Source: Paraphysomonas bandaiensis
Taxonomy: Eukaryota; Protista; Chrysophyceae
DNA: 64,000 nt
Direction: 5' to 3'
Assembly: GCA_965644295.1 (NCBI GenBank)
Contig: CBFFRP010000070.1
Location: 1-64,000 of the forward strand
Both the position numbers and the translations under genes were made by a program. The notes under the pieces are model-generated. The model searched no databases. It was not told where the DNA came from and saw only the letters and a list, made by a program, of their open reading frames with translations. Below, in pieces: positions 1 to 38,977 of the stretch. Position 1 is the first letter of the stretch. Every line of letters starts with the position of its first letter.

Positions 1-260
1 TCCAACACGCACTGGCAGACTTCACCTCTTGCATCATACGATGACGAGTGCAAGTAAGGAACAACTTTGCACAGTTGCCTATGTGCATCAAGTTGTCCCT
101 CGGGGCATCGAACGGAGCGTTCCCACATACGCCTAGCAGCAGCCCTTTCACGGTAGGCATACCGATACCGATTGGACCTACGTAATAGAGAGCCCCGTCC
201 CCTACGATTGCGAGGTTTAGGCTTAGTGGAGCCCGCTGCTGGATCTGTAGTGGCAGACAT
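1..260 (-). CDS. N-terminal part of LTR-encoded SET-domain ORF (runs off window edge)
   Basis: Equivalent to 7851-8110; ATG at 260 on the minus strand. Confidence 0.75.
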   Translation of the reverse strand, partial: MSATTDPAAGSTKPKPRNRRGRGSLLRRSNRYRYAYRERAAARRMWERSVRCPEGQLDAHRQLCKVVPYLHSSSYDARGEVCQCVL

Positions 261-746
261 TGTTTATGCAGCAATGGATATGATGTATGTATCTGATGTG
301 GACATTGGTTCTTAGTCTGAGATAGTAGATGTAGAAAAAGCATCATACGGTATGCTGCACACTCACATACATGTTGGTCCATTGTAATACAGTAGCAGTA
401 CTCTGAATACGCAGTATTCAACGGCTAATTTACAAACTGGCGAGTGTGGTGTGTGGTGTCATCGCGAGTGTGGTGTGTTGTGCTTGTTCTATGTTGCATT
501 GCTTTACAGCTCAGTGTTTTGTTAAGTGTTGTTCTGTTTGTACACTAGTGTTCTGACTTCACTGGAGGTGGGGTTTGCGCGGTGATTCTTGGAGGGAGTC
601 ACTAGTACAAGCTTGCAACGCTTGACATACTGTTTAGAGTAATAATCATCCTGTTCTCCTGCAATCAGACGTACATATAGCTCTGGTTAACTCATTGTGT
701 TTGTTTCTGCTGCACAGCCTTGGTTATCAAACCTGGCTGTGTCATA
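1..746 (+). repeat. 5' LTR of Gypsy copy A (last 746 of 1360 bp)
   Basis: Direct repeat of 7851-8596 and 13994-14739, ending ...GCTGTGTCATA. Confidence 0.95.
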
Positions 747-1053
747 GTAATTAATTACTTAAAAAAGCAGATCAGCGCTGATAGTAATTGTTACACATAC
801 AACTCATTTTGCAATATTTGCAACACTTGTCATTCTTGCACATTAGAATACTGAGCTTGGCCTTTATTAGCCTCCTCGTATTCGAATAGTCCTTAGAGTC
901 TATAGATTGCATACCAGTGCAAGCTTAGGGATTAAGGAGTGATATCTTGCAGTGTTTGAGAATACATATCCGTGAGCGCGGACTCCGTTAGACTGCGCCG
1001 TTAAGAGTGTACCTTGGACACTGCAACAAACTCAATATTTTGGAAAACTGCTC

Positions 1054-1179
1054 TTATCGCATTGACAACTGACCGTCTGCGAAATGAGTGGATACCTCAA
1101 TTATTGAGTGGGTGAGAAAGACCTTGTAAGAGACTTGCAATACAATTTTATCGCATTGACAACTGACCGTCTGCGAAAT
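1054..1179 (+). repeat. 32-bp perfect direct repeat in Gypsy 5' leader (1054-1085 and 1148-1179)
   Basis: TTATCGCATTGACAACTGACCGTCTGCGAAAT occurs twice. Confidence 0.9.
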
Positions 1180-1274
1180 ACTTGTACAGCAATATCTACA
1201 TAGTTCGATCTTGCGATAGCTCCAACAAACCTGAGCCCAAGCTGTCCTGTGATTGATAAAGACCGCAATTCATA

Positions 1275-3077
1275 ATGTCTACTCCTAGTGGCAAAAAGTC
1301 CAGCAAGAAGTCGTCCACTGCCCCACTGCGTCCTAAACCAGTGGTACAGGAGGACTCACCAGATAAAATAGATGAGAGTCAATACGAAGAAGCGCCCATG
1401 ATGCCTTCACCTTCTGCCCCAGCATCCTCAGCAACCCAACAGATTCTGGACTCAGTACAGGAGATCCAAGGCACCCTGGGACAAGTAGCCTTTGCGATAT
1501 CCAACCTAGACAGTAGGGTACAAGCTCTGGAGAGTTCTAAGAGAGCAGATACACCTGATTCACCAGACACCCAGAGTGATGACACACCTGATTCATTCAG
1601 TAGCAAGGGCAGTAAAGCAAGTACCACACCCAGGGGAGTCACTAAGCGTGCTAAGAAAGACCGACCAAAACCCCGTTATTCCACTTTAGGAGATCTGGCT
1701 ACATTCAGGAGATTGCCAGAGAAGAAAGAGCAACTGAGTGAGGAGAGCTCCGACTCAGAGCTTGAGGAAGAGGCAGAAGAACATTTGGGGCGTCTTGCCA
1801 GTGTTTTTGGAGAGAAACGTCCAGGAAAGTTCTTCCGGAATTTGAAACGCAGCGCCAAGGTGGCCCAAGCTAAGACTGTCAATATAACTAGGCTTGAGAA
1901 GAAGTGTCACGTCAGGATTGAGACATTCAAACTTGGTAGAGTTTCAAGGGCGATCAAGGAGATTCTGGATTTCCAAGAAGAGGAAGAAACAGAAGTCCGC
2001 ATCCAGAAAGTTTTATCTAGAAACCTGAAGGATCACTTGCGTTCCGTCTATGATATTCAACACGCAGAATTAGCTAGCATGGACATATCTGACCTCATGA
2101 GAATCGTAGCCCTAGAGACGAAAGTTTTCAGCTGTGTTGGGTTTTACAACGAGCTGAAAGAATCTCTCAGCCATATGAAGGTCATGGAGTGGGACAATGT
2201 CAACGCTGTCAATTTTGAAGCCTTCTATTTTCAACAACTTCGTTTGATAGAATCCTTTAAAAGGATGTTGTCTATCATGTTGGAAAATGAAAGCAACAGG
2301 CGTTGGTGTCCACAGGCTGACGACAAGGAATACGGCCTTATTAGGCTATTTAAAACCCTGAACGACGTCACATATGTGAAATTTGTTCTAGGTTGTATTC
2401 CGAAGAAGAAGTTCGACTTTATGGAAGACTTCTTCAAACTATATACGGAGGTACTGTTAGACCATTACCAGATCACGATTGCTTATAAACAGTTGCCCTT
2501 CAAAGCAACCGTGCAACATCAGGCGAAGTATGAGGAATACATGAAGCGCAAGCGTGAAATGTTTTCTAGACCTAAGCCTGGAGTGGCAAAGAATTCCACT
2601 AGCACCCACTCTTCTACCAGGTTATTTAACATGGAAGAGGAACAGGCTTCTTTTTCTTCAAATGAATTTTCTCATGATGAAGAAGATTTATGGGATGCCT
2701 ATGGGGATACATGGAAAAGCAACAACCACAGTACCGATGTTCCTACTGGCGGCAAACCTAATGGCGAGCCAGCGACCGAAACTTCTGAAGAGAAAGATAC
2801 ATCCGACTCAGAAGGAGCTTTGCAAGCTATGGATGGCCAGAATCCATCTCATAAACCCAAACAAGAGAAGTATGGGTGCATGAGAAAAATCATGTATGGC
2901 AAGTGCGACAAGAGTGATTGTCGTTATAGCCATAATCCTAGAGCTCTCGCCAATACCGCTTCGGAATTGGCTGAGAAATCCCAAGCTTATTTGAAGACCA
3001 CTTCTTCAACTTCGGGGTCTCAGGATAAACCTCCTGCTATTTTAAGGAGAGATCGCTTCGGCGACTCTCGTCCTTGA
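1275..3077 (+). CDS. gag: Gag-like protein (600 aa) with C-terminal CCCH-type zinc finger
   Basis: First long ORF after LTR, directly upstream of pol; C-x8-C-x4-C-x3-H (CMRKIMYGKCDKSDCRYSH). Confidence 0.8.
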   Translation: MSTPSGKKSSKKSSTAPLRPKPVVQEDSPDKIDESQYEEAPMMPSPSAPASSATQQILDSVQEIQGTLGQVAFAISNLDSRVQALESSKRADTPDSPDTQSDDTPDSFSSKGSKASTTPRGVTKRAKKDRPKPRYSTLGDLATFRRLPEKKEQLSEESSDSELEEEAEEHLGRLASVFGEKRPGKFFRNLKRSAKVAQAKTVNITRLEKKCHVRIETFKLGRVSRAIKEILDFQEEEETEVRIQKVLSRNLKDHLRSVYDIQHAELASMDISDLMRIVALETKVFSCVGFYNELKESLSHMKVMEWDNVNAVNFEAFYFQQLRLIESFKRMLSIMLENESNRRWCPQADDKEYGLIRLFKTLNDVTYVKFVLGCIPKKKFDFMEDFFKLYTEVLLDHYQITIAYKQLPFKATVQHQAKYEEYMKRKREMFSRPKPGVAKNSTSTHSSTRLFNMEEEQASFSSNEFSHDEEDLWDAYGDTWKSNNHSTDVPTGGKPNGEPATETSEEKDTSDSEGALQAMDGQNPSHKPKQEKYGCMRKIMYGKCDKSDCRYSHNPRALANTASELAEKSQAYLKTTSSTSGSQDKPPAILRRDRFGDSRP

Positions 3078-3092
3078 GATAAGGAGGTTAAC

Positions 3093-6000
3093 ATGATTGA
3101 GGACCTAGAAGAACATGTGATCAGTGTTTGTGATGGGAATGATGATTGTGATTATCTCCCAGAGGCTAAAACATTGAATACTACTTCTTCAAAGGTCCAT
3201 TTCAAGGATGGAGCTAAGCTGTATGCTTCATATCCTTCAGCCAAGAAATTTTCATCAGCACATACTGTAGGTAGAGTAATTATAGACAAGAAGTTCGGAG
3301 TGGAAGAATTAGTGAAAGTTTTATGTGACACAGGAGCCCTATCCGCTAACTACGTAGCACGTGATCTTGTGGATAGATTGCGTACCAAGCTAGAACCTAG
3401 CAGGTTCTACAAGGTCAAACACCGTGTGGTTTTGGCAGACAGTAGAACCGTAAAGGATCTTGACGAAGGGGTTCGATTGAACTTAGTGTTTACCGATCCC
3501 AAGAGTCACACTTACCAGTACACTGGTGAGTTCATCGTGATCGACATGTCATCTAATGACATTATTTTGGGACTACCAGCCCTCACTGGGAAGCTATACC
3601 CTTTCATGTGTGCTGTCATGGAGCAGGCCCATGAGAATCATCTCGAAGATTCGGCTCAAGGGAACCATAATTTGAGTGCCCTACAAAATGAGGACATGGA
3701 ATCCAGAGAGGAACACCGACGTCCCTGGAGTAAAGCGAATGATGCTATCGCTCCAGAAGATAACGAGACTGAGTTACCCGTTCAATTCAAAGATGCTTTG
3801 ACATTCCTCGGAAAGTCTAGAGAGGAAGCTCTTAACGACTACTATGAACAAATAGAAACTCACGTCAGTCAGGAGATGAAACAAGAGACCAACATTATGG
3901 ATCTCTTATCTTCCAAAGCTGAGAAGGTATTCGTGCCTGATGAGTGGACAGGAGTCCGAGGTGTTGACCCTTTGACTCTTAAGTGGAAAGAAACTTTACC
4001 TGAAAGAATGAAACCCAGAGCCAGGCCGATCAACCCTAAGCTCTGGGAAGCATCCGAAAAGGAGTTCAGGAGACTATGTGGTTATTTTTACCAGAAGAGC
4101 AGATCTCCTTGGGCTTCATGCTTGGTGGTTGCTCCCAAGGCTACTCCACCTTATATCCGATTCTGCGGGGATTATGTTAATATCAACAAGCACATGCAAG
4201 TGGGTAATTATACAATTCCCAATGTCAAGCATGAATTGGACAAGATCATCAATTTCCCATTGTATATGGACATCGACTTGACCAACGCTTTCCATCAGAT
4301 ACCTCTAGCGGAAGAAACATCAGAGAGGCTTTCTATCCAGACGCCATGGGGCCAATATGCGCCAAAGTTCATGCCAGAAGGTATTGCGCCGGCTACTGGA
4401 ATTCTGCAAGAGGTAGTCAGGGAAATATTTGAAGATTTTTCTGACTGGGCCATTGTAATATTTGACAACATGTTGATATTGGCCAACGACCCTCAAGATG
4501 CGTATCAGAAATTTGAGAAAGTGATTGACAGATGCATCGAGAGGAATCTCAAACTGAAAATGCCAAAGAGTTGGCTTGGATTTAGAAAAGTAGACTTCTT
4601 CGGATACGTATGCAGACACAAATCCTATGAAGTCAATCCTGAGAAGAAGGAAGCCCTAGGCAAAATCCCAATGCCTACCAACACCAAACAAGCGAGGTCT
4701 CTGCTTGGCAAGGGCGTGTTCTTTTCCAGTTTTACCCCTAGATATTCAGACTTGGTTGCTCATCTCACAGATTTGACCAAATCGAAATTCAATTGGGACA
4801 AGACTACGTGGCGGCACGATTATGAGGCTGAATATCGTCGCTTCATAAAAGGCCTGCAAGATTCCTGCGAATTGTTCTACCCAGACTACAATTTGGAGTG
4901 GACACTGCGTACTGACGCTAGTGAGCTAGGAATCGGCTCGGTGCTTCTGCAGAAAAAGATTCTCGCAGATGGAACAGAGCAGTTGCAACCCATTGCCTTC
5001 CTGTCAAAGAAGTTTTCAGCTCAGGCTCAGAAATGGGCTACGATAGAGCAAGAAGCTTATGGTATTTACTACAGTGTCAAGCACTTAGCGTACTATTTGA
5101 TTGGGAAGCAGTTCACTATAGAGACTGACCACAATAATCTCTTGTGGATGGAGTCGTCTGAAGTACCTAAGATCACAAGATGGAGAATTTTCTTGCAATC
5201 TTTCAACTTCAGCATTAAACACATATCGGGTGCCAAGAATTGGTTAGCCGATTGGTTATCTCGGGAGCATCAAGTTGCGGCGTTGTCCGGTATATTCTTA
5301 GATGAAGACTATGCCGATGCCTACTTCCTTGGAGAGGACTGCACTGAGGATGAATTTTTTAACTTCTTGGGCAATTTTATGAACCCAGAAGACAGGGAAG
5401 TATCTCCTCATGCGCAAAGTTCAGTCACTCCCGAGGATGCCTTGCAACAAGTACATAATGCCCGAGTTGGACATCTCGGTGGGCGAGCCACTTGGATTCG
5501 ACTTAATAAGCAATTCCCCGGCCATGGAATTCCTTACAAAGTAGTCGAAGACTTCATTGCGAAGTGTCCAAACTGTGTTAAGACTAGATTGGCGATGAAA
5601 GAAGCGCTGATCCCTATAGTCCGAAACCTTAAGCCTCCGAGCGCTCGGAGTGCTATTGGTATTGATGCGGTAGAAATCACACCCCATGGTGCTGATGGAT
5701 ACACGCACATTAATGTCGTAGTCAACCTGTTCACCAAGTTAGTTTATCTTGAGCCAGTCAAAGGAGTGACTGCCCTCAACTTGGCAAACACGGTATGGAA
5801 GTATTGGAGTTACTACGGACACACTGATCTTATCATCTCAGATCAGGGTCCTGACCTAACTTCCGATCTTTTCAAACAACTGACTGAATATATGGGCGTC
5901 CGACACACCTTCAGCATAGCCAACAGGCATGCTAATGGTTGTGAACGCATCATCGGTGAGGTGGTCCGACATTTGCGTGCCCTAGTATATGAAAACAGCA

Positions 6001-7058
6001 AGCGTGTAGAACGAAAGGATGTTTTTGAGGATCCCAGCTGGATACCCAGCGCTCAATACATTCTGAATTCAGAAGTCTCATCCGAGACGGGGTACTCACC
6101 CTTTGAGCTCACTTTTGGCTCTAATGATCTGGAATATTTAACTATGAATATACAGACTTTGCCTGAGCGTGCACACGCCAGACTGACTGCTCTTAATGAA
6201 CAGTTAGAAGGCCTACGGGCGGCTTCCAAAACTTACCAGCAGCAGTTAGCGAGTGAACGTGCTGGGGAGGGAGTTCACCCGGACAAGCAGAACCGATATC
6301 AACCGGGCGACTTCATTTTATTTGACAAAGGCGCCAAGGTTCATCCCAAGATGTCACATCGATACATGGGACCTTTTGTTGTTAAGACCCAGTACAAAAA
6401 TGACATTGATTGTCAGCACCTTGCTACAGGGCAAGTGGTACGTGTTTCAGTGACAGACGTCAAACTGTTTCCAGGTGATAGAGAAACTGCGTACAGCATG
6501 GCTCTACGAGACCAGGATCAGCATGTCATTGACAAGATTCTCTACTATCGGGGTGACAGAGAGTCACGCTCCACTTTGATTTTTACTGTGAGATTTCAGG
6601 ATGGTGATGTCAGAGAAGTGCCTTATAGCAAGGACCTTTTTGACTCAGTGCCTTACGCGGACTTTTGTTCCAGCAAACGGTACCTCTACCACCTGATTTA
6701 TCCAGCGGAGGGTGCCAAGAAATATATCTCGGACATCCGACGCCAGTCTATCACTCAGTTCAAACCCGGTGACCATGCATATGTTGACCTACGCATTTAT
6801 GGCGACGTATGGTACGACGGACTGCAGTTACCAGACTCCCACTTACTGACCTATGTAGCTCCGATCCAGTTCACACACTGGTATCATCGAAGCTCTAGGA
6901 GAGTATTATCCGTCAAGGATCTTCTCACTCTCCGCACTTACCGTTATGACAACTACCTCGTGCATTGTTTCGTTCACCCTGAACTAGACACTAGCACTAT
7001 GGTACTCGTCGACAAGGACTTGGCTACACGCTACCCTCAAGTCCTTGAGTCCGTTTAG
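3093..7058 (+). CDS. pol: Pol polyprotein: aspartic protease, RT, RNase H, integrase, chromodomain-like tail (1321 aa)
   Basis: LCDTGA protease; RFCGDY, DLTNAFHQ, MPEG, IFDN (RT); TDAS, EQEA, TDH, ADWLSR (RNase H); H..H..CPNC, D-D-E, GPF (integrase). Confidence 0.95.
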   Translation: MIEDLEEHVISVCDGNDDCDYLPEAKTLNTTSSKVHFKDGAKLYASYPSAKKFSSAHTVGRVIIDKKFGVEELVKVLCDTGALSANYVARDLVDRLRTKLEPSRFYKVKHRVVLADSRTVKDLDEGVRLNLVFTDPKSHTYQYTGEFIVIDMSSNDIILGLPALTGKLYPFMCAVMEQAHENHLEDSAQGNHNLSALQNEDMESREEHRRPWSKANDAIAPEDNETELPVQFKDALTFLGKSREEALNDYYEQIETHVSQEMKQETNIMDLLSSKAEKVFVPDEWTGVRGVDPLTLKWKETLPERMKPRARPINPKLWEASEKEFRRLCGYFYQKSRSPWASCLVVAPKATPPYIRFCGDYVNINKHMQVGNYTIPNVKHELDKIINFPLYMDIDLTNAFHQIPLAEETSERLSIQTPWGQYAPKFMPEGIAPATGILQEVVREIFEDFSDWAIVIFDNMLILANDPQDAYQKFEKVIDRCIERNLKLKMPKSWLGFRKVDFFGYVCRHKSYEVNPEKKEALGKIPMPTNTKQARSLLGKGVFFSSFTPRYSDLVAHLTDLTKSKFNWDKTTWRHDYEAEYRRFIKGLQDSCELFYPDYNLEWTLRTDASELGIGSVLLQKKILADGTEQLQPIAFLSKKFSAQAQKWATIEQEAYGIYYSVKHLAYYLIGKQFTIETDHNNLLWMESSEVPKITRWRIFLQSFNFSIKHISGAKNWLADWLSREHQVAALSGIFLDEDYADAYFLGEDCTEDEFFNFLGNFMNPEDREVSPHAQSSVTPEDALQQVHNARVGHLGGRATWIRLNKQFPGHGIPYKVVEDFIAKCPNCVKTRLAMKEALIPIVRNLKPPSARSAIGIDAVEITPHGADGYTHINVVVNLFTKLVYLEPVKGVTALNLANTVWKYWSYYGHTDLIISDQGPDLTSDLFKQLTEYMGVRHTFSIANRHANGCERIIGEVVRHLRALVYENSKRVERKDVFEDPSWIPSAQYILNSEVSSETGYSPFELTFGSNDLEYLTMNIQTLPERAHARLTALNEQLEGLRAASKTYQQQLASERAGEGVHPDKQNRYQPGDFILFDKGAKVHPKMSHRYMGPFVVKTQYKNDIDCQHLATGQVVRVSVTDVKLFPGDRETAYSMALRDQDQHVIDKILYYRGDRESRSTLIFTVRFQDGDVREVPYSKDLFDSVPYADFCSSKRYLYHLIYPAEGAKKYISDIRRQSITQFKPGDHAYVDLRIYGDVWYDGLQLPDSHLLTYVAPIQFTHWYHRSSRRVLSVKDLLTLRTYRYDNYLVHCFVHPELDTSTMVLVDKDLATRYPQVLESV

Positions 7059-7210
7059 AGCACGGGACCAATCAACTTACACGCGATCTTCCAACTCCAA
7101 CGCTCCTCTGCTGCACCTTCGTTTTGATGGCTAATTTTTAGTTCCGTTGAAATTTGTGGGCCGCAGAGTGACGCCCGTCTTCATCATTTCGCATAATACT
7201 TATATCAAAC

Positions 7211-7236
7211 AAAAAAAAAAAAGGGAGGCGGGGCAA
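7211..7236 (+). other. Polypurine tract of Gypsy copy A
   Basis: A12-GGGAGGCGGGGCAA immediately before the LTR-initial TG. Confidence 0.85.
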
Positions 7237-8596
7237 TGTGACCACGTGGCATTTCACATGCCTCAGTCACGTGTCTATAGTAAGTGCAAAACTACTAACT
7301 ACGGGATGAAGACAGAGACGATAGAAGTATCAGAAACATATCATTATTACGCTACAGATTACTGAAGAACTAGCACTAGGACTGGAGGTACAATTTCCCA
7401 TAATCTGCCAACAGCTCTTCGCCGGCCGCAACTGCCCGAGTGGTCTGCACCCAGACCACGTCCAAGCCGGACTCATCTACTACAAATTCGCAGTTGAAGC
7501 GCCAGCCAGCAGCATGGTCAGAAGGATACACCGTGTTTATATACCTACCATGATTATGAGGCACCCGGGCCAAATAAGCTTGGGACCCCAGCGGCCAAAG
7601 GTAACCTATGTCCCGAGTGTCCCGCTCCGCATCTATATAGAAGTCCTTAGCCATCTCAAGTATGTATGCTCCCCAGCTGGGACGGGAGGTATACACTTCA
7701 CCGCTGTAGAGGCAGAAACGCAGTCCTAGCTCCAAATCCTGTAAGGAGAATAAACCTTGCTGTTCAGGCTTATCGCCCTGCGGGTTGGCAATGTTTAGGC
7801 CAGACCGGACTTCCACATAGGGATTCACTGTCCCACACCTCTGGTAGAAGTCCAACACGCACTGGCAGACTTCACCTCTTGCATCATACGATGACGAGTG
7901 CAAGTAAGGAACAACTTTGCACAGTTGCCTATGTGCATCAAGTTGTCCCTCGGGGCATCGAACGGAGCGTTCCCACATACGCCTAGCAGCAGCCCTTTCA
8001 CGGTAGGCATACCGATACCGATTGGACCTACGTAATAGAGAGCCCCGTCCCCTACGATTGCGAGGTTTAGGCTTAGTGGAGACCGCTGCTGGATCTGTAG
8101 TGGCAGACATTGTTTATGCAGCAATGGATATGATGTATGTATCTGATGTGGACATTGGTTCTTAGTCTGAGATAGTAGATGTAGGAAAAGCATCATACGG
8201 TATGCTGCACACTCACATACATGTTGGTCCATTGTAATACAGTAGCAGTACTCTGAATACGCAGTATTCAACGGCTAATTTACAAACTGGCGAGTGTGGT
8301 GTGTGGTGTCATCGCGAGTGTGGTGTGTTGTGCTTGTTCTATGTTGCATTGCTTTACAGCTCAGTGTTTTGTTAAGTGTTGTTCTGTTTGTACACTAGTG
8401 TTCTGACTTCACTGGAGGTGGGGTTTGCGCGGTGATTCTTGGAGGGAGTCACTAGTACAAGCTTGCAACGCTTGACATACTGTTTAGAGTAATAATCATC
8501 CTGTTCTCCTGCAATCAGACGTACATATAGCTCTGGTTAACTCATTGTGTTTGTTTCTGCTGCACAGCCTTGGTTATCAAACCTGGCTGTGTCATA
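7237..8596 (+). repeat. LTR (1360 bp), TGTGAC...GTCATA
   Basis: Follows PPT; near-identical to 13380-14739 (offset 6143). Confidence 0.93.
7376..8110 (-). CDS. SET-domain protein (244 aa), wholly inside the LTR, antisense
   Basis: SET motifs in order: QGLFS, YSGEV, Y..E....YIDA, GRYINT, NCEF, RAVAAGEELLADYG..Y; Arg-rich N-terminus. Confidence 0.88.
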   Translation of the reverse strand: MSATTDPAAVSTKPKPRNRRGRGSLLRRSNRYRYAYRERAAARRMWERSVRCPEGQLDAHRQLCKVVPYLHSSSYDARGEVCQCVLDFYQRCGTVNPYVEVRSGLNIANPQGDKPEQQGLFSLQDLELGLRFCLYSGEVYTSRPSWGAYILEMAKDFYIDAERDTRDIGYLWPLGSQAYLARVPHNHGRYINTVYPSDHAAGWRFNCEFVVDESGLDVVWVQTTRAVAAGEELLADYGKLYLQS

Positions 8597-9220
8597 CTGT
8601 TAGACCATTACCAGATCACGATTGCTTATAAACAGTTGCCCTTCAAAGCAACCGTGCAACATCAGGCGAAGTATGAGGAATACATGAAGCGCAAGCGTGA
8701 AATGTTTTCTAGACCTAAGCCTGGAGTGGCAAAGAATTCCACTAGCACCCACTCTTCTACCAGGTTATTTAACATGGAAGAGGAACAGGCTTCTTTTTCT
8801 TCAAATGAATTTTCTCATGATGAAGAAGATTTATGGGATGCCTATGGGGATACATGGAAAAGCAACAACCACAGTACCGATGTTCCTACTGGCGGCAAAC
8901 CTAATGGCGAGCCAGCGACCGAAACTTCTGAAGAGAAAGATACATCCGACTCAGAAGGAGCTTTGCAAGCTATGGATGGCCAGAATCCATCTCATAAACC
9001 CAAACAAGAGAAGTATGGGTGCATGAGAAAAATCATGTATGGCAAGTGCGACAAGAGTGATTGTCGTTATAGCCATAATCCTAGAGCTCTCGCCAATACC
9101 GCTTCGGAATTGGCTGAGAAATCCCAAGCTTATTTGAAGACCACTTCTTCAACTTCGGGGTCTCAGGATAAACCTCCTGCTATTTTAAGGAGAGATCGCT
9201 TCGGCGACTCTCGTCCTTGA
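8597..9220 (+). pseudogene. gag: 5'-interrupted gag of copy B
   Basis: Encodes only the C-terminal ~207 aa of Gag, abutting the LTR end. Confidence 0.9.
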
Positions 9221-9235
9221 GATAAGGAGGTTAAC

Positions 9236-12200
9236 ATGATTGAGGACCTAGAAGAACATGTGATCAGTGTTTGTGATGGGAATGATGATTGTGATTATCT
9301 CCCAGAGGCTAAAACATTGAATACTACTTCTTCAAAGGTCCATTTCAAGGATGGAGCTAAGCTGTATGCTTCATATCCTTCAGCCAAGAAATTTTCATCA
9401 GCACATACTGTAGGTAGAGTAATTATAGACAAGAAGTTCGGAGTGGAAGAATTAGTGAAAGTTTTATGTGACACAGGAGCCCTATCCGCTAACTACGTAG
9501 CACGTGATCTTGTGGATAGATTGCGTACCAAGCTAGAACCTAGCAGGTTCTACAAGGTCAAACACCGTGTGGTTTTGGCAGACAGTAGAACCGTAAAGGA
9601 TCTTGACGAAGGGGTTCGATTGAACTTAGTGTTTACCGATCCCAAGAGTCACACTTACCAGTACACTGGTGAGTTCATCGTGATCGACATGTCATCTAAT
9701 GACATTATTTTGGGACTACCAGCCCTCACTGGGAAGCTATACCCTTTCATGTGTGCTGTCATGGAGCAGGCCCATGAGAATCATCTCGAAGATTCGGCTC
9801 AAGGGAACCATAATTTGAGTGCCCTACAAAATGAGGACATGGAATCCAGAGAGGAACACCGACGTCCCTGGAGTAAAGCGAATGATGCTATCGCTCCAGA
9901 AGATAACGAGACTGAGTTACCCGTTCAATTCAAAGATGCTTTGACATTCCTCGGAAAGTCTAGAGAGGAAGCTCTTAACGACTACTATGAACAAATAGAA
10001 ACTCACGTCAGTCAGGAGATGAAACAAGAGACCAACATTATGGATCTCTTATCTTCCAAAGCTGAGAAGGTATTCGTGCCTGATGAGTGGACAGGAGTCC
10101 GAGGTGTTGACCCTTTGACTCTTAAGTGGAAAGAAACTTTACCTGAAAGAATGAAACCCAGAGCCAGGCCGATCAACCCTAAGCTCTGGGAAGCATCCGA
10201 AAAGGAGTTCAGGAGACTATGTGGTTATTTTTACCAGAAGAGCAGATCTCCTTGGGCTTCATGCTTGGTGGTTGCTCCCAAGGCTACTCCACCTTATATC
10301 CGATTCTGCGGGGATTATGTTAACATCAACAAGCACATGCAAGTGGGTAATTATACAATTCCCAATGTCAAGCATGAATTGGACAAGATCATCAATTTCC
10401 CATTGTATATGGACATCGACTTGACCAACGCTTTCCATCAGATACCTCTAGCGGAAGAAACATCAGAGAGGCTTTCTATCCAGACGCCATGGGGCCAATA
10501 TGCGCCAAAGTTCATGCCAGAAGGTATTGCGCCGGCTACTGGAATTCTGCAAGAGGTAGTCAGGGAAATATTTGAAGATTTTTCTGACTGGGCCATTGTA
10601 ATATTTGACAACATGTTGATATTGGCCAACGACCCTCAAGATGCGTATCAGAAATTTGAGAAAGTGATTGACAGATGCATCGAGAGGAATCTCAAACTGA
10701 AAATGCCAAAGAGTTGGCTTGGATTTAGAAAAGTAGACTTCTTCGGATACGTATGCAGACACAAATCCTATGAAGTCAATCCTGAGAAGAAGGAAGCCCT
10801 AGGCAAAATCCCAATGCCTACCAACACCAAACAAGCGAGGTCTCTGCTTGGCAAGGGCGTGTTCTTTTCCAGTTTTACCCCTAGATATTCAGACTTGGTT
10901 GCTCATCTCACAGATTTGACCAAATCGAAATTCAATTGGGACAAGACTACGTGGCGGCACGATTATGAGGCTGAATATCGTCGCTTCATAAAAGGCCTGC
11001 AAGATTCCTGCGAATTGTTCTACCCAGACTACAATTTGGAGTGGACACTGCGTACTGACGCTAGTGAGCTAGGAATCGGCTCGGTGCTTCTGCAGAAAAA
11101 GATTCTCGCAGATGGAACAGAGCAGTTGCAACCCATTGCCTTCCTGTCAAAGAAGTTTTCAGCTCAGGCTCAGAAATGGGCTACGATAGAGCAAGAAGCT
11201 TATGGTATTTACTACAGTGTCAAGCACTTAGCGTACTATTTGATTGGGAAGCAGTTCACTATAGAGACTGACCACAATAATCTCTTGTGGATGGAGTCGT
11301 CTGAAGTACCTAAGATCACAAGATGGAGAATTTTCTTGCAATCTTTCAACTTCAGCATTAAACACATATCGGGTGCCAAGAATTGGTTAGCCGATTGGTT
11401 ATCTCGGGAGCATCAAGTTGCGGCGTTGTCCGGTATATTCTTAGATGAAGACTATGCCGATGCCTACTTCCTTGGAGAGGACTGCACTGAGGATGAATTT
11501 TTTAACTTCTTGGGCAATTTTATGAACCCAGAAGACAGGGAAGTATCTCCTCATGCGCAAAGTTCAGTCACTCCCGAGGATGCCTTGCAACAAGTACATA
11601 ATGCCCGAGTTGGACATCTCGGTGGGCGAGCCACTTGGATTCGACTTAATAAGCAATTCCCCGGCCATGGAATTCCTTACAAAGTAGTCGAAGACTTCAT
11701 TGCGAAGTGTCCAAACTGTGTTAAGACTAGATTGGCGATGAAAGAAGCGCTGATCCCTATAGTCCGAAACCTTAAGCCTCCGAGCGCTCGGAGTGCTATT
11801 GGTATTGATGCGGTAGAAATCACACCCCATGGTGCTGATGGATACACGCACATTAATGTCGTAGTCAACCTGTTCACCAAGTTAGTTTATCTTGAGCCAG
11901 TCAAAGGAGTGACTGCCCTCAACTTGGCAAACACGGTATGGAAGTATTGGAGTTACTACGGACACACTGATCTTATCATCTCAGATCAGGGTCCTGACCT
12001 AACTTCCGATCTTTTCAAACAACTGACTGAATATATGGGCGTCCGACACACCTTCAGCATAGCCAACAGGCATGCTAATGGTTGTGAACGCATCATCGGT
12101 GAGGTGGTCCGACATTTGCGTGCCCTAGTATATGAAAACAGCAAGCGTGTAGAACGAAAGGATGTTTTTGAGGATCCCAGCTGGATACCCAGCGCTCAAT

Positions 12201-13201
12201 ACATTCTGAATTCAGAAGTCTCATCCGAGACGGGGTACTCACCCTTTGAGCTCACTTTTGGCTCTAATGATCTGGAATATTTAACTATGAATATACAGAC
12301 TTTGCCTGAGCGTGCACACGCCAGACTGACTGCTCTTAATGAACAGTTAGAAGGCCTACGGGCGGCTTCCAAAACTTACCAGCAGCAGTTAGCGAGTGAA
12401 CGTGCTGGGGAGGGAGTTCACCCGGACAAGCAGAACCGATATCAACCGGGCGACTTCATTTTATTTGACAAAGGCGCCAAGGTTCATCCCAAGATGTCAC
12501 ATCGATACATGGGACCTTTTGTTGTTAAGACCCAGTACAAAAATGACATTGATTGTCAGCACCTTGCTACAGGGCAAGTGGTACGTGTTTCAGTGACAGA
12601 CGTCAAACTGTTTCCAGGTGATAGAGAAACTGCGTACAGCATGGCTCTACGAGACCAGGATCAGCATGTCATTGACAAGATTCTCTACTATCGGGGTGAC
12701 AGAGAGTCACGCTCCACTTTGATTTTTACTGTGAGATTTCAGGATGGTGATGTCAGAGAAGTGCCTTATAGCAAGGACCTTTTTGACTCAGTGCCTTACG
12801 CGGACTTTTGTTCCAGCAAACGGTACCTCTACCACCTGATTTATCCAGCGGAGGGTGCCAAGAAATATATCTCGGACATCCGACGCCAGTCTATCACTCA
12901 GTTCAAACCCGGTGACCATGCATATGTTGACCTACGCATTTATGGCGACGTATGGTACGACGGACTGCAGTTACCAGACTCCCACTTACTGACCTATGTA
13001 GCTCCGATCCAGTTCACACACTGGTATCATCGAAGCTCTAGGAGAGTATTATCCGTCAAGGATCTTCTCACTCTCCGCACTTACCGTTATGACAACTACC
13101 TCGTGCATTGTTTCGTTCACCCTGAACTAGACACTAGCACTATGGTACTAGTCGACAAGGACTTGGCTACACGCTACCCTCAAGTCCTTGAGTCCGTTTA
13201 G
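9236..13201 (+). CDS. pol: Pol polyprotein, copy B (1321 aa)
   Basis: Translation identical to 3093-7058; only synonymous differences noticed. Confidence 0.95.
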   Translation: MIEDLEEHVISVCDGNDDCDYLPEAKTLNTTSSKVHFKDGAKLYASYPSAKKFSSAHTVGRVIIDKKFGVEELVKVLCDTGALSANYVARDLVDRLRTKLEPSRFYKVKHRVVLADSRTVKDLDEGVRLNLVFTDPKSHTYQYTGEFIVIDMSSNDIILGLPALTGKLYPFMCAVMEQAHENHLEDSAQGNHNLSALQNEDMESREEHRRPWSKANDAIAPEDNETELPVQFKDALTFLGKSREEALNDYYEQIETHVSQEMKQETNIMDLLSSKAEKVFVPDEWTGVRGVDPLTLKWKETLPERMKPRARPINPKLWEASEKEFRRLCGYFYQKSRSPWASCLVVAPKATPPYIRFCGDYVNINKHMQVGNYTIPNVKHELDKIINFPLYMDIDLTNAFHQIPLAEETSERLSIQTPWGQYAPKFMPEGIAPATGILQEVVREIFEDFSDWAIVIFDNMLILANDPQDAYQKFEKVIDRCIERNLKLKMPKSWLGFRKVDFFGYVCRHKSYEVNPEKKEALGKIPMPTNTKQARSLLGKGVFFSSFTPRYSDLVAHLTDLTKSKFNWDKTTWRHDYEAEYRRFIKGLQDSCELFYPDYNLEWTLRTDASELGIGSVLLQKKILADGTEQLQPIAFLSKKFSAQAQKWATIEQEAYGIYYSVKHLAYYLIGKQFTIETDHNNLLWMESSEVPKITRWRIFLQSFNFSIKHISGAKNWLADWLSREHQVAALSGIFLDEDYADAYFLGEDCTEDEFFNFLGNFMNPEDREVSPHAQSSVTPEDALQQVHNARVGHLGGRATWIRLNKQFPGHGIPYKVVEDFIAKCPNCVKTRLAMKEALIPIVRNLKPPSARSAIGIDAVEITPHGADGYTHINVVVNLFTKLVYLEPVKGVTALNLANTVWKYWSYYGHTDLIISDQGPDLTSDLFKQLTEYMGVRHTFSIANRHANGCERIIGEVVRHLRALVYENSKRVERKDVFEDPSWIPSAQYILNSEVSSETGYSPFELTFGSNDLEYLTMNIQTLPERAHARLTALNEQLEGLRAASKTYQQQLASERAGEGVHPDKQNRYQPGDFILFDKGAKVHPKMSHRYMGPFVVKTQYKNDIDCQHLATGQVVRVSVTDVKLFPGDRETAYSMALRDQDQHVIDKILYYRGDRESRSTLIFTVRFQDGDVREVPYSKDLFDSVPYADFCSSKRYLYHLIYPAEGAKKYISDIRRQSITQFKPGDHAYVDLRIYGDVWYDGLQLPDSHLLTYVAPIQFTHWYHRSSRRVLSVKDLLTLRTYRYDNYLVHCFVHPELDTSTMVLVDKDLATRYPQVLESV

Positions 13202-13379
13202 AGCACGGGACCAATCAACTTACACGCGATCTTCCAACTCCAACGCTCCTCTGCTGCACCTTCGTTTTGATGGCTAATTTTTAGTTCCGTTGAAATTTGT
13301 GGGCCGCAGAGTGACGCCCGTCTTCATCATTTCGCATAATACTTATATCAAACAAAAAAAAAAAAGGGAGGCGGGGCAA

Positions 13380-14739
13380 TGTGACCACGTGGCATTTCAC
13401 ATGCCTCAGTCACGTGTCTATAGTAAGTGCAAAACTACTAACTACGGGATGAAGACAGAGACGATAGAAGTATCAGAAACATATCATTATTACGCTACAG
13501 ATTACTGAAGAACTAGCACTAGGACGGGAGGTACAATTTCCCATAATCTGCCAACAGCTCTTCGCCGGCCGCAACTGCCCGAGTGGTCTGCACCCAGACC
13601 ACGTCCAAGCCGGACTCATCTACTACAAATTCGCAGTTGAAGCGCCAGCCAGCAGCATGGTCAGAAGGATACACCGTGTTTATATACCTACCATGATTAT
13701 GAGGCACCCGGGCCAAATAAGCTTGGGACCCCAGCGGCCAAAGGTAACCTATGTCCCGAGTGTCCCGCTCCGCATCTATATAGAAGTCCTTAGCCATCTC
13801 AAGTATGTATGCTCCCCAGCTGGGACGGGAGGTATACACTTCACCGCTGTAGAGGCAGAAACGCAGTCCTAGCTCCAAATCCTGTAAGGAGAATAAACCT
13901 TGCTGTTCAGGCTTATCGCCCTGCGGGTTGGCAATGTTTAGGCCAGACCGGACTTCCACATAGGGATTCACTGTCCCACACCTCTGGTAGAAGTCCAACA
14001 CGCACTGGCAGACTTCACCTCTTGCATCATACGATGACGAGTGCAAGTAAGGAACAACTTTGCACAGTTGCCTATGTGCATCAAGTTGTCCCTCGGGGCA
14101 TCGAACGGAGCGTTCCCACATACGCCTAGCAGCAGCCCTTTCACGGTAGGCATACCGATACCGATTGGACCTACGTAATAGAGAGCCCCGTCCCCTACGA
14201 TTGCGAGGTTTAGGCTTAGTGGAGCCCGCTGCTGGATCTGTAGTGGCAGACATTGTTTATGCAGCAATGGATATGATGTATGTATCTGATGTGGACATTG
14301 GTTCTTAGTCTGAGATAGTAGATGTAGGAAAAGCATCATACGGTATGCTGCACACTCACATACATGTTGGTCCATTGTAATACAGTAGCAGTACTCTGAA
14401 TACGCAGTATTCAACGGCTAATTTACAAACTGGCGAGTGTGGTGTGTGGTGTCATCGCGAGTGTGGTGTGTTGTGCTTGTTCTATGTTGCATTGCTTTAC
14501 AGCTCAGTGTTTTGTTAAGTGTTGTTCTGTTTGTACACTAGTGTTCTGACTTCACTGGAGGTGGGGTTTGCGCGGTGATTCTTGGAGGGAGTCACTAGTA
14601 CAAGCTTGCAACGCTTGACATACTGTTTAGAGTAATAATCATCCTGTTCTCCTGCAATCAGACGTACATATAGCTCTGGTTAACTCATTGTGTTTGTTTC
14701 TGCTGCACAGCCTTGGTTATCAAACCTGGCTGTGTCATA
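13380..14739 (+). repeat. 3' LTR of Gypsy copy B (1360 bp)
   Basis: Preceded by same PPT; near-identical to 7237-8596. Confidence 0.93.
13519..14253 (-). CDS. SET-domain protein (244 aa), LTR-encoded, second full copy
   Basis: Differs from 7376-8110 at 2 aa (V10G, Q243P); all SET motifs intact. Confidence 0.88.
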   Translation of the reverse strand: MSATTDPAAGSTKPKPRNRRGRGSLLRRSNRYRYAYRERAAARRMWERSVRCPEGQLDAHRQLCKVVPYLHSSSYDARGEVCQCVLDFYQRCGTVNPYVEVRSGLNIANPQGDKPEQQGLFSLQDLELGLRFCLYSGEVYTSRPSWGAYILEMAKDFYIDAERDTRDIGYLWPLGSQAYLARVPHNHGRYINTVYPSDHAAGWRFNCEFVVDESGLDVVWVQTTRAVAAGEELLADYGKLYLPS

Positions 14740-14771
14740 CAATAGCTGGGAGGCGTCATAGTACAACACTC

Positions 14772-16261: not shown

Positions 16262-16686
16262 CAGGGATAGGGAACAATATATTGCAATACTATTGTTAGA
16301 TAGCGTTCCATCAATAGTATTGATGGATTTTTTAAACCGGCCCTACAATACTATTTCAATATATTTCAATATATTGTACAATGTATTGCAATACAATATA
16401 TTATTAGGATTCAGCTTAATACATGATTGTATCTGTGAGTTATAATGTTCAATGAAATATACCATGAACTGAATTAGAGAGAGTATCTGTCGAAGATACG
16501 TGATCGTCATCATAACGTCGTCATTATCAGTTACACTTCTAACTATTCCGTTGTGCATGATAGTACGTTCTATATTGTTATTCATAATTTTCACTCTATC
16601 GTGTTCATTACTTACACTCTAATAATCACAACATTGTTTTACTATTATAAAGATCAATTCTTTATTTATATTGTTCCCTATCCCTG
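16262..16686. mobile_element. MITE (CAGGG TIR, hAT-like) interrupted by a solo LTR
   Basis: TIR CAGGGATAGGGAACAATATA / TATATTGTTCCCTATCCCTG; internal sequence shared with 16728-16851. Confidence 0.75.
16402..16666 (+). repeat. Solo LTR related to the Copia at 38713-45931
   Basis: 265 bp, starts TATTAGGATTCAGC, ends TT, flanked by 5-bp TSD TATAT. Confidence 0.85.
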
Positions 16687-16851: not shown

Positions 16852-17978
16852 CTATCTAGTATCTGAAACCAGGGGTTCAATAACTATATATAGCAAAACT
16901 ATTGAGAGATAGTGTTCCAACAATGTTTTAGTTTTATAGCGTTCCGTCAATACTACTGATGAAGGTTTTAGAACCGGATCAATCATTGATCAGTAAAAGT
17001 AAACACATAAGTAGATTCCAGTTTTAGTACTAGTCATTGAGTTCACATTATAAAAAGAACACTTTGTTGGCTACTTCTTAGCTAATTACAATTTTCCTCA
17101 TACATATCCTCTGAGCCATCATCGGTGACGTCAGCATTTATAGCGCAAAGTAAATGTTGTGCCGATTCACCTGCTAAATTTAACGTTGTGTTTTCAAGTG
17201 TTTCAATATTCTGTGCATATCAACTTGTCCACAGTATCGTTGAAAGTTGTGTCACTTATGATGAATCAACAAAGTGGTACTGTATGTGCTTGAATTTCAG
17301 CTTAGTGTTTGAAACAAAACAAAAACTTCTTCAATCTGCCGTTCTTCCACCTTCAAAAACTGAGACTGTGGAGCTCTTCATCAAAACCTACCCAGCCTCG
17401 TCACAGTTGAGCTCAAAGTACACACTAATCATGACGAGAATCGCATCCACTTTGACTGCAGGGCACTACAAGAATACAGAAGCAGTCGCTATCAAGAACC
17501 ACGACATAGCCGGAATACAAATAGAGGTGTGACGGTGACTACAGCGAGGGAGCAGCAGAGGAAGCCTCGAATAAAAGAAAACTGGAGCTGAACTCATACG
17601 TAGCAGCTATGAGCCAGAGGAGTAAGAAGCTACATGCGTTTGTTCGTCACTCACGCTAACAGACATACATGTTCGTTAATGGGTTCCGGCCTGTCTGCTC
17701 GACACACCAGAGCAGAGCGGCGGAACCTGCCTGCAGATATCTTCCACTCATCGGTAGTCATCATCTTATTTTTCGGAAATAAATTGAAGTAAAAATCATC
17801 TAAATTACTGCAATACAACTACGGCTGAAATACAGATAATTGTTGTCTCAATTATTTGAGGCATCTTGGAACAAAAATATACAAAGGATGCCGATACGTA
17901 CTGCTGTACTCTGCTGTATACCGTATACGCAACTTCTGGTATTGTATGTATACTGTTGTATACACTGTTATCTGTAAA

Positions 17979-23422: not shown

Positions 23423-23600
23423 GTATCTATCTACAGGAGTCTATACCGGTAGACTGCTGTATGCTGTATACCTACACAAGCAGCAAGTCGAGTGCGCTGC
23501 GGCAGTGTTCTGATAGGCTACGAGTACATACATACCCACATAGAGCAAGTGCACCCACCTCATACATAAAATCTCATAGATCTACACGTGACCGGCGCCC

Positions 23601-38712: not shown

Positions 38713-38977
38713 TATTAGGATTCAGCTTAATACATGATTGTATCTGTGAGTTATAATGTTCAATGAAATATACCATGAACTGAATTAGAGAGAGTATCTG
38801 TCTAAGATACGTGATCGTCATCATAACGTCGTCATTATCAGTTACACTTCTAACTATTCCGTTGTTGTGCATGATAGTACGTTCTATATTGTTATTCATA
38901 ATCTTTACTCTATCGTGTTCATTTCTTACACTCTAATAATCACAACATTGTTTTACTAATAAGCTTAAATCTTATTT
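38713..38977 (+). repeat. Copia 5' LTR (265 bp, TA...TT)
   Basis: Matches 45670-45931 except one substitution and a 3-bp indel seen. Confidence 0.9.

Follow-up and report, generated by a model that had tools for sequence, protein, structure and literature searches.

Mobile elements are usually viewed as targets of chromatin silencing, and only a few cases are described in which they carry chromatin enzymes, namely DNA methyltransferases in retrotransposons and SET genes in oomycete DNA transposons. SET genes have been noted in HarbingerS and MuDR transposons (Kojima and Jurka 2014, as cited in PMC12730594) and in a proto-Helentron of Phytophthora infestans (PMC4067079), and SET–transposon fusion gene models have been listed (bioRxiv 10.1101/2021.11.30.470311). 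Retrotransposons of dinoflagellates and charophytes have acquired cytosine DNA methyltransferases (PMC5890265), and a methyl-CpG binding domain is known from Copia elements (PMC6673714). In addition, plant Ty3/gypsy elements such as those of the Retand lineage have antisense ORFs downstream of pol, ahead of the 3′ LTR; most of the Retand ORFs specify a TRP28 domain, whose role is unknown, and none a SET domain (PMC11963269).

The locus described here lies in a 64,000-nucleotide stretch of DNA from Paraphysomonas bandaiensis (hereafter, the window). Like the HarbingerS, MuDR and proto-Helentron cases, as these are described, it is a protist mobile element with a separate small SET gene beside its transposition genes, and the presumed purpose of the SET gene is likewise to act on chromatin marks. 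However, those carriers are DNA or rolling-circle transposons, whereas the carrier in the window has gag, pol and LTRs, with the SET gene antisense and duplicated in the LTR. With the DNA-methyltransferase and methyl-CpG retrotransposons it shares a host-type epigenetic writer or reader and an acquisition that is old, multi-copy and selected; in contrast, their domains lie in the sense coding region and concern DNA methylation rather than protein lysines. Similar to Retand, a conserved antisense gene is found downstream of pol, and its layout recurs exactly in two relatives (L029 and L030), but the ORF in the window lies past the polypurine tract and inside the LTR, a position described for no Retand ORF. 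A protein-coding gene within an LTR is also found in mouse mammary tumour virus, whose sag is LTR-borne like the SET gene but is encoded in sense orientation and specifies a superantigen. A literature search, with Repbase Reports and GyDB outside its scope, turned up no LTR retrotransposon described as bearing a SET gene. Given the SET genes of oomycete DNA transposons, the novelty is narrower than suggested in an earlier sequence-only reading of this DNA (the initial annotation).

The carrier element and the ORF inside its LTR

Self-comparison of the window revealed an array in the order partial LTR a, gag and pol, LTR b, a second internal region, and LTR c (Table 1). With direct LTRs, RT before integrase and a polypurine tract, the carrier is a Ty3/gypsy-type (Metaviridae-like) LTR retrotransposon; RT, RNase H and integrase follow one another in the order expected from the initial assignment to Ty3/Gypsy. 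The Pfam domains of pol are RVT_1 (residues 377–505), RT_RNaseH (598–704), Integrase_H2C2 (782–831) and rve (857–944). No protease was detected by Pfam in the window pol, and one relative gave a weak RVP_2 match. The gag-like ORF shares 33–55% identity with the ORF that precedes pol in relatives. Within the window, the search for a primer-binding site returned no tRNA-type site after position 746, no complement to the LTR and no tRNA genes. A 4-bp target-site duplication is present in the relative L030, while the left end of the window array lies beyond the window. The copies in the window are 99.7–99.9% alike and hence young.

Table 1. Positions of features of the SET-bearing array in the window
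Feature	Position	Strand	Remarks
LTR copy a	1..746	+	last 746 bp, in window; 99.7–99.9% identical to 7851–8596 and 13994–14739
SET ORF copy a	1..260	-	open over the 86 N-terminal codons in view; differs from copy b at one residue
Internal region, unit 1	747..7236	+	between LTR a and LTR b
gag-like ORF, 600 aa	1275..3077	+	upstream of pol; weak CCCH zinc-finger match
pol, 1321 aa	3093..7058	+	intact; Pfam RVT_1, RT_RNaseH, Integrase_H2C2, rve in order
pol C-terminal extension, small beta-barrels	6528..7055	+	AlphaFold pLDDT >90
Polypurine tract, unit 1	7210..7235	+	purine run; ends two bases (7235–7236) before LTR TG at 7237
LTR copy b, 1360 bp	7237..8596	+	termini TGTGAC...GTCATA; common to units 1 and 2
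SET ORF copy b, 244 aa	7376..8110	-	ATG start; inside LTR b, antisense to gag-pol
SET core, residues ~113–240	7391..7774	-	family profile aligns positions to solved SET domains
Basic N-terminal segment and long helix, residues ~12–50	7961..8077	-	AlphaFold helix 22–50
LTR segment, SET start to LTR end	8111..8596	.	putative divergent promoter region, from geometry
Internal region, unit 2	8597..13379	+	99.9% identical to corresponding unit 1 part; one ~1.7 kb deletion
gag remnant, unit 2	8597..9220	+	gene broken by one deletion
pol, unit 2, 1321 aa	9236..13201	+	open
Polypurine tract, unit 2	13353..13378	+	register as in 7210–7235
LTR copy c	13380..14739	+	differs from copy b at 2 of 1360 bp; homology stops at 14739–14740
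SET ORF copy c, 244 aa	13519..14253	-	open; two amino-acid differences from copy b

LTR b is bounded by the polypurine tract followed by TG, and independent metagenome contigs settle where the LTR ends: the 1360-bp unitig L017 is identical to 7237–8596, L014 and L016 span the LTR completely and continue into foreign sequence past its 5′ end, and L015 has foreign sequence past the 3′ end. These boundaries place the ORF at 7376–8110 wholly within the LTR. The LTRs of L030 have the same termini as the window LTR, and a polypurine tract precedes the 3′ LTR in the window element and also in L011, L001, L025, L030 and L031.

The intact 244-aa antisense ORF initially annotated in the 1360-bp LTR is present; its frame is unbroken in the two complete LTRs and as far as the third is visible, and its three copies are 1–2 residues apart. 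None of 5000 shuffles of the LTR gave an ORF of at least 244 aa (mean longest ORF, 77 aa), and a chance ORF was rejected on this basis. Because the ORF lies inside the LTR, a full element of the window family has the gene twice, and a lone LTR would retain it once. Consistent with the proposal that the gene is kept by LTRs without an element, LTRs with non-element flanks, which are lone or 5′ LTRs, retain the ORF (L002, L005, L014 and L016). The related proposal that every insertion delivers the gene twice holds for full copies of the window family, but the LTR position is not universal: in L029 and L030, the SET gene is located between pol and the polypurine tract, outside the LTR.

Fold and conserved residues of the encoded protein

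Searched singly, the window protein gave E 4.2e-4 and 21.2 bits against Pfam SET (PF00856; curated cut-off 22.4), and its best phmmer match in the PDB was KMT5A (E ~0.08). As these matches were only marginal, the family was needed. Pfam counts and residue conservation were taken from 50 full-length relatives, 47 of which matched Pfam SET (best E 1.1e-13). The family profile matched 111 distinct solved SET chains (best E 3.7e-9), and two relatives searched singly against the PDB (P0022 and P0005) gave nothing at E 0.01. The best 50 PDB fold matches of the AlphaFold model (pLDDT 92.8, pTM 0.84) were all SET methyltransferases (E to 2.6e-7, probability 1.0, target TM-score ~0.6), with MLL1, LegAS4, SET7/9 and SET8 among the named matches. 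Profile searches and structure prediction both bear out the SET assignment of the initial annotation, with the window protein alone falling just below the Pfam cut-off, and the predicted ORF product is a compact SET-domain protein. Profile E-values for the substrate types H3K4, H3K9, H3K27, H4K20 and H3K14 were within ~30-fold of one another, so that the substrate class is not assignable from them.

LegAS4/RomA, a histone methyltransferase of Legionella with a SET domain (PDB 5czy, 8sr6 and 8swi), gave the only contiguous sequence alignment over the whole SET core and had the highest identity, 25%, among the best 50 PDB fold matches. Its cofactor motif, like that of the window protein, has the Asn-not-His form. 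However, LegAS4/RomA is secreted by a bacterium and contains ankyrin repeats; its identity is low, and common descent is unsupported beyond the SET superfamily. Giant viruses of algae and protists, such as Pyramimonas orientalis virus and Bodo saltans virus in BFVD, are genetic parasites that likewise encode compact SET proteins (fold E ~1e-7), but these proteins match no more closely than cellular SET domains, and minimal viral SETs are without the conserved N-terminal part of the window family, which spans ~110 residues. Chlorovirus vSET was not a named match among the best 50 in either fold library.

The SET motifs of the initial annotation are present and lie on family-conserved columns. 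Y135 and G137 are kept in 47 of the 50 relatives, N192 in 47, E232 in 49 and Y237 in 47, and the cofactor-binding and catalytic-Tyr columns are retained in 45–50. The annotated replacement of the usual RFINH His by Thr extends across the family: the position after Asn is Thr or Ser in 47/50 relatives and His in 0/50. LegAS4/RomA has Phe at the aligned position and is an active SET enzyme (PMC10653858), and hence the lack of the His does not preclude activity. The Arg-rich N-terminus is real and basic family-wide, with R44 and R51 kept in 48–49 of 50 relatives, and may act in nuclear import or nucleosome binding. As annotated, the post-SET cysteine region is absent, and the protein stops 7 residues past the DYG motif. 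A small Cys/His cluster had also been pointed out before the SET domain; its residues are present in the window protein but are common to just 3–9 of the 50 relatives, and a conserved metal (zinc) site at this position was rejected for that reason. Overall, the initial annotation is borne out in part, with an intact LTR-borne SET gene in a Ty3/gypsy element; to be amended or extended are the Cys/His cluster, which is not conserved, the LTR position, which is not universal, and the novelty, which is narrower.

Relatives, gene order and selection

At E ≤1e-10, the SET family comprises 98 clusters. A locus search with a 6-sequence alignment returned 4 loci, and a word-based search with a large alignment returned 14 proteins. 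An antisense SET gene adjoins pol or gag in L001, L003, L004, L007, L010, L011, L012, L013, L025, L026, L028 and L029, and it lies beside gag/pol in all relatives with enough flank, down to ~30% identity. The same arrangement is seen in at least two relatives selected by pol alone (L030, L031 and L032). SET and pol identities fall together, at 96/98, 58/84, 43/63, 34/61 and 31/59% (SET/pol), and in one decayed copy (L028), SET, gag and pol are all broken. Judged from these loci, the SET gene is a long-standing part of one Ty3/gypsy-type lineage of marine protists. A gene combining a kinase with EF-hands, the ocean metagenome origin of related sequences and the MMETSP homologue all indicate a marine protist, as opposed to animal, crop or human DNA. 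An MMETSP transcript of 915 nt contains the complete ORF of a 52%-identical SET homologue; read in SET sense, it finishes with a brief run of A, short of where the LTR edge would be expected, which provides a hint of SET expression in a relative.

In divergent pairs, differences in the SET ORF concentrate at codon position three (e.g., 45/34/105 at positions one, two and three; p 5e-11). For L001 vs L019, dN is 0.23 and dS 2.2, and dN/dS is 0.42 for SET and 0.37 for pol in the close pair of the window and L011. At the protein level, SET changes ~4× faster than pol (dN 0.46 vs 0.11). A truncated ORF was found in 5 of the 16 distinct close variants listed, and both differences between LTRs b and c are non-synonymous and fall in the ORF, a number too small to weigh. 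Between families, alignment of the LTR is confined to the SET ORF together with the polypurine tract and LTR start, and against the P0003 family, the polypurine tract and LTR start form the sole alignable non-coding stretch. These substitution patterns indicate that the SET ORF is a real gene under purifying selection.

Proposed mechanism and alternative readings

The SET and gag start codons diverge and are 1015 bp apart at the 5′ LTR (window positions 260 and 1275; L013). Since the segment at 8111–8596 has a counterpart facing gag at the 5′ LTR, SET and gag-pol may be transcribed divergently. Based on this geometry and the features of the protein, we propose a plausible mechanism. First, SET transcription would proceed outward from this LTR segment, and the transcript would terminate within the LTR, short of its edge. 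The basic N-terminus would bring the SET protein to the nucleus or onto nucleosomes. With S-adenosylmethionine, the protein would then methylate a lysine, most likely in a histone tail. Finally, the methyl mark would favour the element, most likely by countering host silencing of element copies. The target lysine and the activating or repressing sense of the mark are not readable from sequence. The element thereby probably delivers its own chromatin-modifying enzyme at each insertion site. We assign a probability of roughly 0.55 to the account as a whole, comprising a selected LTR-borne SET gene, divergent transcription, histone-lysine methylation and anti-silencing. Against this account, the SET mRNA would be antisense to the 3′-terminal part of the element genomic RNA and could feed RNA interference instead of opposing silencing. 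The faster change of SET than of pol, the truncated variants and the sub-threshold Pfam score of the window protein likewise count against it.

An active SET enzyme might alternatively write a repressive or targeting mark on the element's own copies or on chosen chromatin, by which the element restrains itself or guides insertion, with barrels at the integrase end as possible readers. The repressive-mark enzymes EHMT2, EZH2 and KMT5A fit the family profile nearly as well as activating ones, and additional small beta-barrels are predicted at the pol C-terminus. In fold searches, these barrels came closest to the SETDB1 triple Tudor, MBT repeats and Ty3 integrase, of which the Tudor and MBT proteins are methyl-lysine readers. 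The two units in the window also share one LTR. However, TM-scores of the reader-like matches are low (0.15–0.24), no Pfam reader domain was found in 29 pol relatives and no Pfam or PDB sequence match for the pol C-terminus, and integrase C-termini commonly hold small beta-barrels; a Tudor/MBT-like reader role of these barrels is a lead only. Shared-LTR arrays can, in addition, come from unequal recombination. We regard a self-restraining or targeting mark as unlikely. A bolder version would have the LTR SET enzyme mark a lysine that the Tudor/MBT-like integrase barrels read, so that the element makes and recognizes its own landing sites, and lone LTRs amount to hundreds of dispersed methyltransferase genes reshaping the host epigenome; this conjecture is decidedly unlikely.

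The substrate could also be a non-histone protein, such as the element's own Gag or integrase or a host factor. SET enzymes with such substrates are established, SET7/9 is among the fold matches, and the SET protein is without a histone-specific flanking domain. The conserved, strongly basic N-terminus nevertheless suits nuclear or nucleosome contact, and the closest matches are histone enzymes, which makes a non-histone substrate decidedly unlikely. Loss of methylation activity, with the SET fold serving as a binding module, appears quite improbable. It would fit the missing His of the usual Asn–His pair (50/50 relatives) and the lack of a post-SET region, and inactive SET proteins with chromatin roles are among those described in PMC12886896; an inactive fold, however, need not keep catalytic residues, so that retention of the Asn, the C-terminal-motif Tyr, the Tyr-x-Gly block and the Gly, Glu and Leu of the C-terminal motif in 45–50 of the 50 relatives counts against it, as does the activity of LegAS4/RomA without that His (PMC10653858).

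If the LTR SET genes were domesticated, dispersed host genes selected for the host, with a purely historical link to the element, intact ORFs in the lone or 5′ LTRs with non-element flanks (L002, L005, L014 and L016) would be readily understood. But divergence of SET parallels that of pol from one family to the next, SET has decayed together with gag and pol in L028, and the window copies are young, and this reading is therefore very improbable. A functionless chance ORF or recently captured host-gene fragment is hardly credible: retroelements do take up host sequence and the window protein alone is below the Pfam cut-off, but the 98 clusters, the codon-position pattern, the shuffles and the position conserved in elements with pol just 59–61% identical contradict it.

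The present case differs from the few described ones in that a whole diversified lineage of LTR retrotransposons retains a selected SET gene. In one branch the gene lies in the LTR, is hence doubled per insertion and would survive complete in solo LTRs, making the LTR a compact, portable gene cassette beyond its role as a regulatory repeat. The lineage also allows a natural comparison between genes inside and outside the LTR, and thereby of accessory-gene movement across the LTR boundary. Should the enzyme act on histones, such elements may contribute to the epigenomes of abundant marine protists.

In a distant relative (L021), the SET gene is located beside Helitron-type genes, as in the proto-Helentron. 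The interpretation of L021 as a solo LTR inserted in a Helitron was rejected, as no LTR terminus motif was found nearby. Separately, the SET-bearing retroelement lineage was observed to be common in ocean metagenomes.

An antisense ORF inside the LTR of a Ty3/gypsy-type element

The initial annotation placed an ORF entirely inside a 1360-bp LTR, antisense to gag-pol and open in both complete LTRs and in the visible part of a third. ORF calling and analysis of the LTR bounds confirmed this observation and support its structural reading. Self-comparison of the window showed that 1-746 equals 7851-8596 and 13994-14739 at 99.7-99.9%, and that 2452-8597 equals 8595-14740 at 99.9%, which indicates two units joined through a common middle LTR (LTR–gag–pol–LTR–internal region–LTR). 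The repeat terminus GTCATA lies at 746, 8596 and 14739, and beyond it the three copies differ. The bounds are also backed by contigs from outside the window (L-numbers denote loci of relatives, mostly from marine metagenomes): the 1360-bp metagenome unitig L017 is equal to 7237-8596, L014 and L016 carry a complete LTR with the 5′ internal region at one side and foreign sequence at the other, and L015 runs from the internal-region end through the LTR into foreign sequence. Thus, the window and independent contigs together place the SET ORF wholly within the LTR, on the strand opposite gag-pol. In 5000 shuffles of the LTR, no ORF as long as this 244-aa frame was found.

Features of the window, with positions on the forward strand
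Feature	Position	Strand	Remarks
SET ORF, copy a	1..260		first 86 codons, all open
ORF upstream of pol	1275-3077		600 aa; weak CCCH zinc-finger match only
pol	3093-7058		1321 aa; reverse transcriptase, RNase H, integrase zinc domain, integrase core in order
pol C-terminal extension	6528-7055		pol residues about 1146-1321; modeled as extra small beta-barrels, pLDDT above 90
Polypurine tract	7210-7235		followed by TG at 7237
SET ORF, copy b	7376..8110	minus	244 aa, ATG start
SET ORF, copy c	13519..14253		same length as copy b
Tandem duplication	17977-23427		2.7-kb unit, 99.96%
Protein kinase domain, then EF-hands	30167-31240	minus	calcium-dependent protein kinase type
Copia-type element	38710-45932		gag, integrase, RVT_2 ORFs at 38988-44116
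Short tandem repeat array	49922-50290		~8-bp steps, about 370 bp
Short tandem repeat array	57251-58660		12-bp period, about 1.4 kb, long ORFs on both strands
Another copia fragment	61000-63645		

The domain order of pol is that of Ty3/gypsy elements. The 600-aa ORF is conserved at the same place upstream of pol in relatives; a search of the element for a primer-binding site identified none. The two units share 99.9% identity, but a single deletion has taken ~1.7 kb from unit 2, leaving gag truncated and pol open. Close copies occur in Tara Oceans and other marine metagenomes, and in one NCBI assembly contig. The host is a marine protist; the DNA does not come from a human, another animal or a crop. 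All parts of the LTR–internal–LTR–internal–LTR array at 1-14739 are 99.7-99.9% alike, and this shared-LTR arrangement likely arose by unequal recombination or by insertion into an LTR. A similar repeat, 100% identical, is seen in L031 and L032 and may be an assembly loop.

Conservation across 38 relatives extends to the last ~180 residues of pol, past the integrase core. Among solved structures, this C-terminus best matches the SETDB1 triple Tudor domain, MBT repeats and Ty3 integrase, with low TM-scores of 0.15-0.24; no Pfam reader domain was found in 29 pol relatives, and the window extension has no Pfam match. These low scores and the missing reader domain leave a writer–reader pairing of SET and the modeled pol C-terminus possible but unsupported.

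Protein fold and conserved residues

Taken alone, the window protein matched Pfam SET at E 4.2e-4 and 21.2 bits, just below the 22.4-bit cut-off, and gave only weak KMT5A matches in the PDB. A word-indexed search returned five relatives at 43-96% identity. The profile built from these drew 345 cluster representatives with E-values of 1e-3 or lower, including 98 at 1e-10 or lower; the majority are 230-330 aa long and span the whole protein. At the family level, 47 of 50 full-length members matched Pfam SET (best 1.1e-13). A profile of these 50 members matched 111 distinct solved SET chains, the best being KMT2C, LegAS4, EHMT2, EZH2 and KMT5A (E 4e-9 to 1e-7). The AlphaFold model built from the 50-member alignment is confident (pLDDT 92.8, pTM 0.84), and its best 50 PDB fold matches are all SET methyltransferases (MLL1, MLL3, LegAS4, SET7/9, SET8, NSD; E about 1e-7). 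Both profile and structure searches support the SET assignment of the initial annotation. Matches in a viral structure library are SET proteins of algal and protist giant viruses, which are no closer in fold to the window protein than cellular SETs are.

Column conservation was counted over the 50 full-length members. The Tyr-x-Gly block and Y149 are each kept in 47/50, D167 and N186 in 50/50, R189, Y190 and N192 in 45-47/50, N206 in 48/50, and G230, E232 and L234 in 45-49/50. Y237, the Tyr of the C-terminal motif, is kept in 47/50, and an aromatic residue four places past it in 43/50. The replacement of the usual His after N192 by Thr, noted earlier for the window protein, proved to be family-wide, with Thr or Ser in 47/50 and His in none. 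In a profile-position alignment, the chain of LegAS4/RomA, a Legionella SET-domain protein, has Asn-Phe where the window protein has Asn-Thr, and the remaining conserved residues line up as well. LegAS4/RomA actively methylates histones (PMC10653858; bioRxiv 10.64898/2026.05.29.728679), so the lack of this His does not point to a dead enzyme. The basic N-terminus is likewise common to the whole family and is modeled as a confident helix in which R44 and R51 are nearly invariant. The Cys and His residues reported ahead of the SET core are present, but only 3-9 of the 50 members have them, so they do not make up a conserved metal site.

Association with the element, two layouts and selection

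At every locus with enough flank, the SET gene runs antisense to the gag or pol genes of this one retroelement lineage, either just beyond the pol end or upstream of gag (L001, L003, L004, L007, L010, L011, L012, L013, L025, L026, L028 and L029). Two further relatives, picked by the pol C-terminus alone and irrespective of SET, both carry the gene (L030; L031 with L032). SET and pol identities to the window drop in step (96/98, 58/84, 43/63, 34/61 and 31/59%), which is consistent with a single ancient acquisition and later inheritance along with the element. Judged by these comparisons, the SET gene belongs to the element. L028 is the one visibly decayed copy, with pol, gag and SET all interrupted (at least two, three and one breaks, respectively, counted from tblastn pieces).

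The position relative to the LTR takes two forms. In the families of the window, P0003, P0022, P0026 (relative proteins) and L031, the LTR start motif, with the polypurine tract ahead of it, is found 82-151 nt past the SET stop codon, and the gene is inside the LTR. In L030 and L029, the tract and LTR start precede the SET start codon by ~80 nt, which puts the gene between pol and the 3′ LTR, within the internal region, the same layout as that of the antisense ORFs of plant Retand elements (PMC11963269). L030:6825-15858 is a complete copy on a 586-kb contig, with a pair of 739-bp LTRs that are 99.6% identical, a target duplication of 4 bp, and termini TGTGAC...GTCATA as in the window family; the SET proteins of this layout have 329 aa, including an N-terminal extension. 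The LTR position described initially thus holds for the window family but is not general: the association is older and exists in two states, of which this is one.

The window and L011, the only close pair not picked for identical protein, gave dN 0.020, dS 0.047 and a ratio of 0.42 for SET, and a ratio of 0.37 for pol. In divergent pairs dS is saturated and differences fall mostly at third codon positions (by codon position, 45/34/105 for window–L020 and 52/46/121 for L001–L019, each p about 5e-11; L001–L019 dN 0.23, dS 2.2). The SET protein changes faster than pol (window vs L001, dN 0.46 and 0.11). Between families, the LTR DNA can be aligned only over the SET ORF and over a stretch made up of the polypurine tract and the initial 45 bp of the LTR. 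Among 16 distinct close variants, 11 have the full length; the N-terminal part is absent from three and the C-terminal part from one, and a contig end interrupts the remaining one.

Proposed working, possible other carriers and the remaining window

With the gene, its fold, the conserved catalytic columns, selection and the constant antisense position established, we propose a plausible working for the gene. At a 5′ LTR, SET and gag diverge from start codons separated by 1015 bp (260 and 1275 in the window; also L013), and both are probably driven from the LTR segment 8111-8596. The SET transcript probably ends inside the LTR: a 915-nt MMETSP transcript of a 52%-identical homologue has a complete ORF and 97 nt beyond the stop, closes with a short stretch of A in the SET sense and does not reach the LTR edge motif, and an AATAAT motif follows the stop codon in both the window and MMETSP sequences. 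The basic N-terminus would then target the protein to the nucleus or to nucleosomes, with a lysine there as the residue to be methylated. We lean weakly toward histones as the substrate and toward the element gaining from opposition to silencing, as the best contiguous and fold matches (LegAS4/RomA, KMT2C, MLL1) are tied to gene regulation; the lean is weak since enzymes of repressive marks match nearly as well. The earlier functional reading, in which the element would carry its own chromatin writer, is plausible. The LTR layout would carry a cost, in that the SET mRNA would be antisense to the 3′ end of the genomic RNA and could form double-stranded RNA.

Transposon-borne chromatin enzymes are already known as a class, to which the LTR SET gene would belong. 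SET genes occur in HarbingerS and MuDR DNA transposons of Phytophthora, according to a passage in PMC12730594 citing Kojima and Jurka 2014, and are reported in a proto-Helentron and some Helentrons (PMC4067079); SET–transposon fusion gene models are among 823 chromatin–transposon fusions (bioRxiv 10.1101/2021.11.30.470311). The nearest retroelement precedents are retrotransposons with DNA methyltransferases (PMC5890265) or a methyl-CpG binding domain (PMC6673714). Our literature search, which lay outside Repbase Reports and GyDB, turned up no SET gene described for an LTR retrotransposon or within an LTR. In L021:3994-12693 (JGI metagenome contig Ga0308003_1000687), a distant family member of 237 aa and 31% identity comes directly after genes for DUF6570, Helitron_like_N and PIF1 helicase domains, all in one orientation, with no LTR terminus motif near it. 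This suggests that the protein family may ride on more than one kind of element, with Helitron-type carriage possible, as reported for a Phytophthora proto-Helentron. In L018:328-522 and 621-1268, on the contig of the 43%-identical relative P0005, a second partial SET-like stretch precedes the complete gene immediately upstream, and the adjacent ORFs have no Pfam match.

Outside the array, the window contains copia-type elements and an EF-hand kinase ORF. Each 2.7-kb copy of the tandem duplication contains a 709-aa ORF without Pfam match (18230-20359 and 20952-23081). The copia-type element is flanked by ~265-bp repeats (38710-38977 and 45666-45931, 98% alike), and a third copy at 16402-16668 looks like a solo LTR. 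The kinase/EF-hand ORF, which suggests a protist or plant-like host, is the only clear host gene seen, of a type known from plants and protists.
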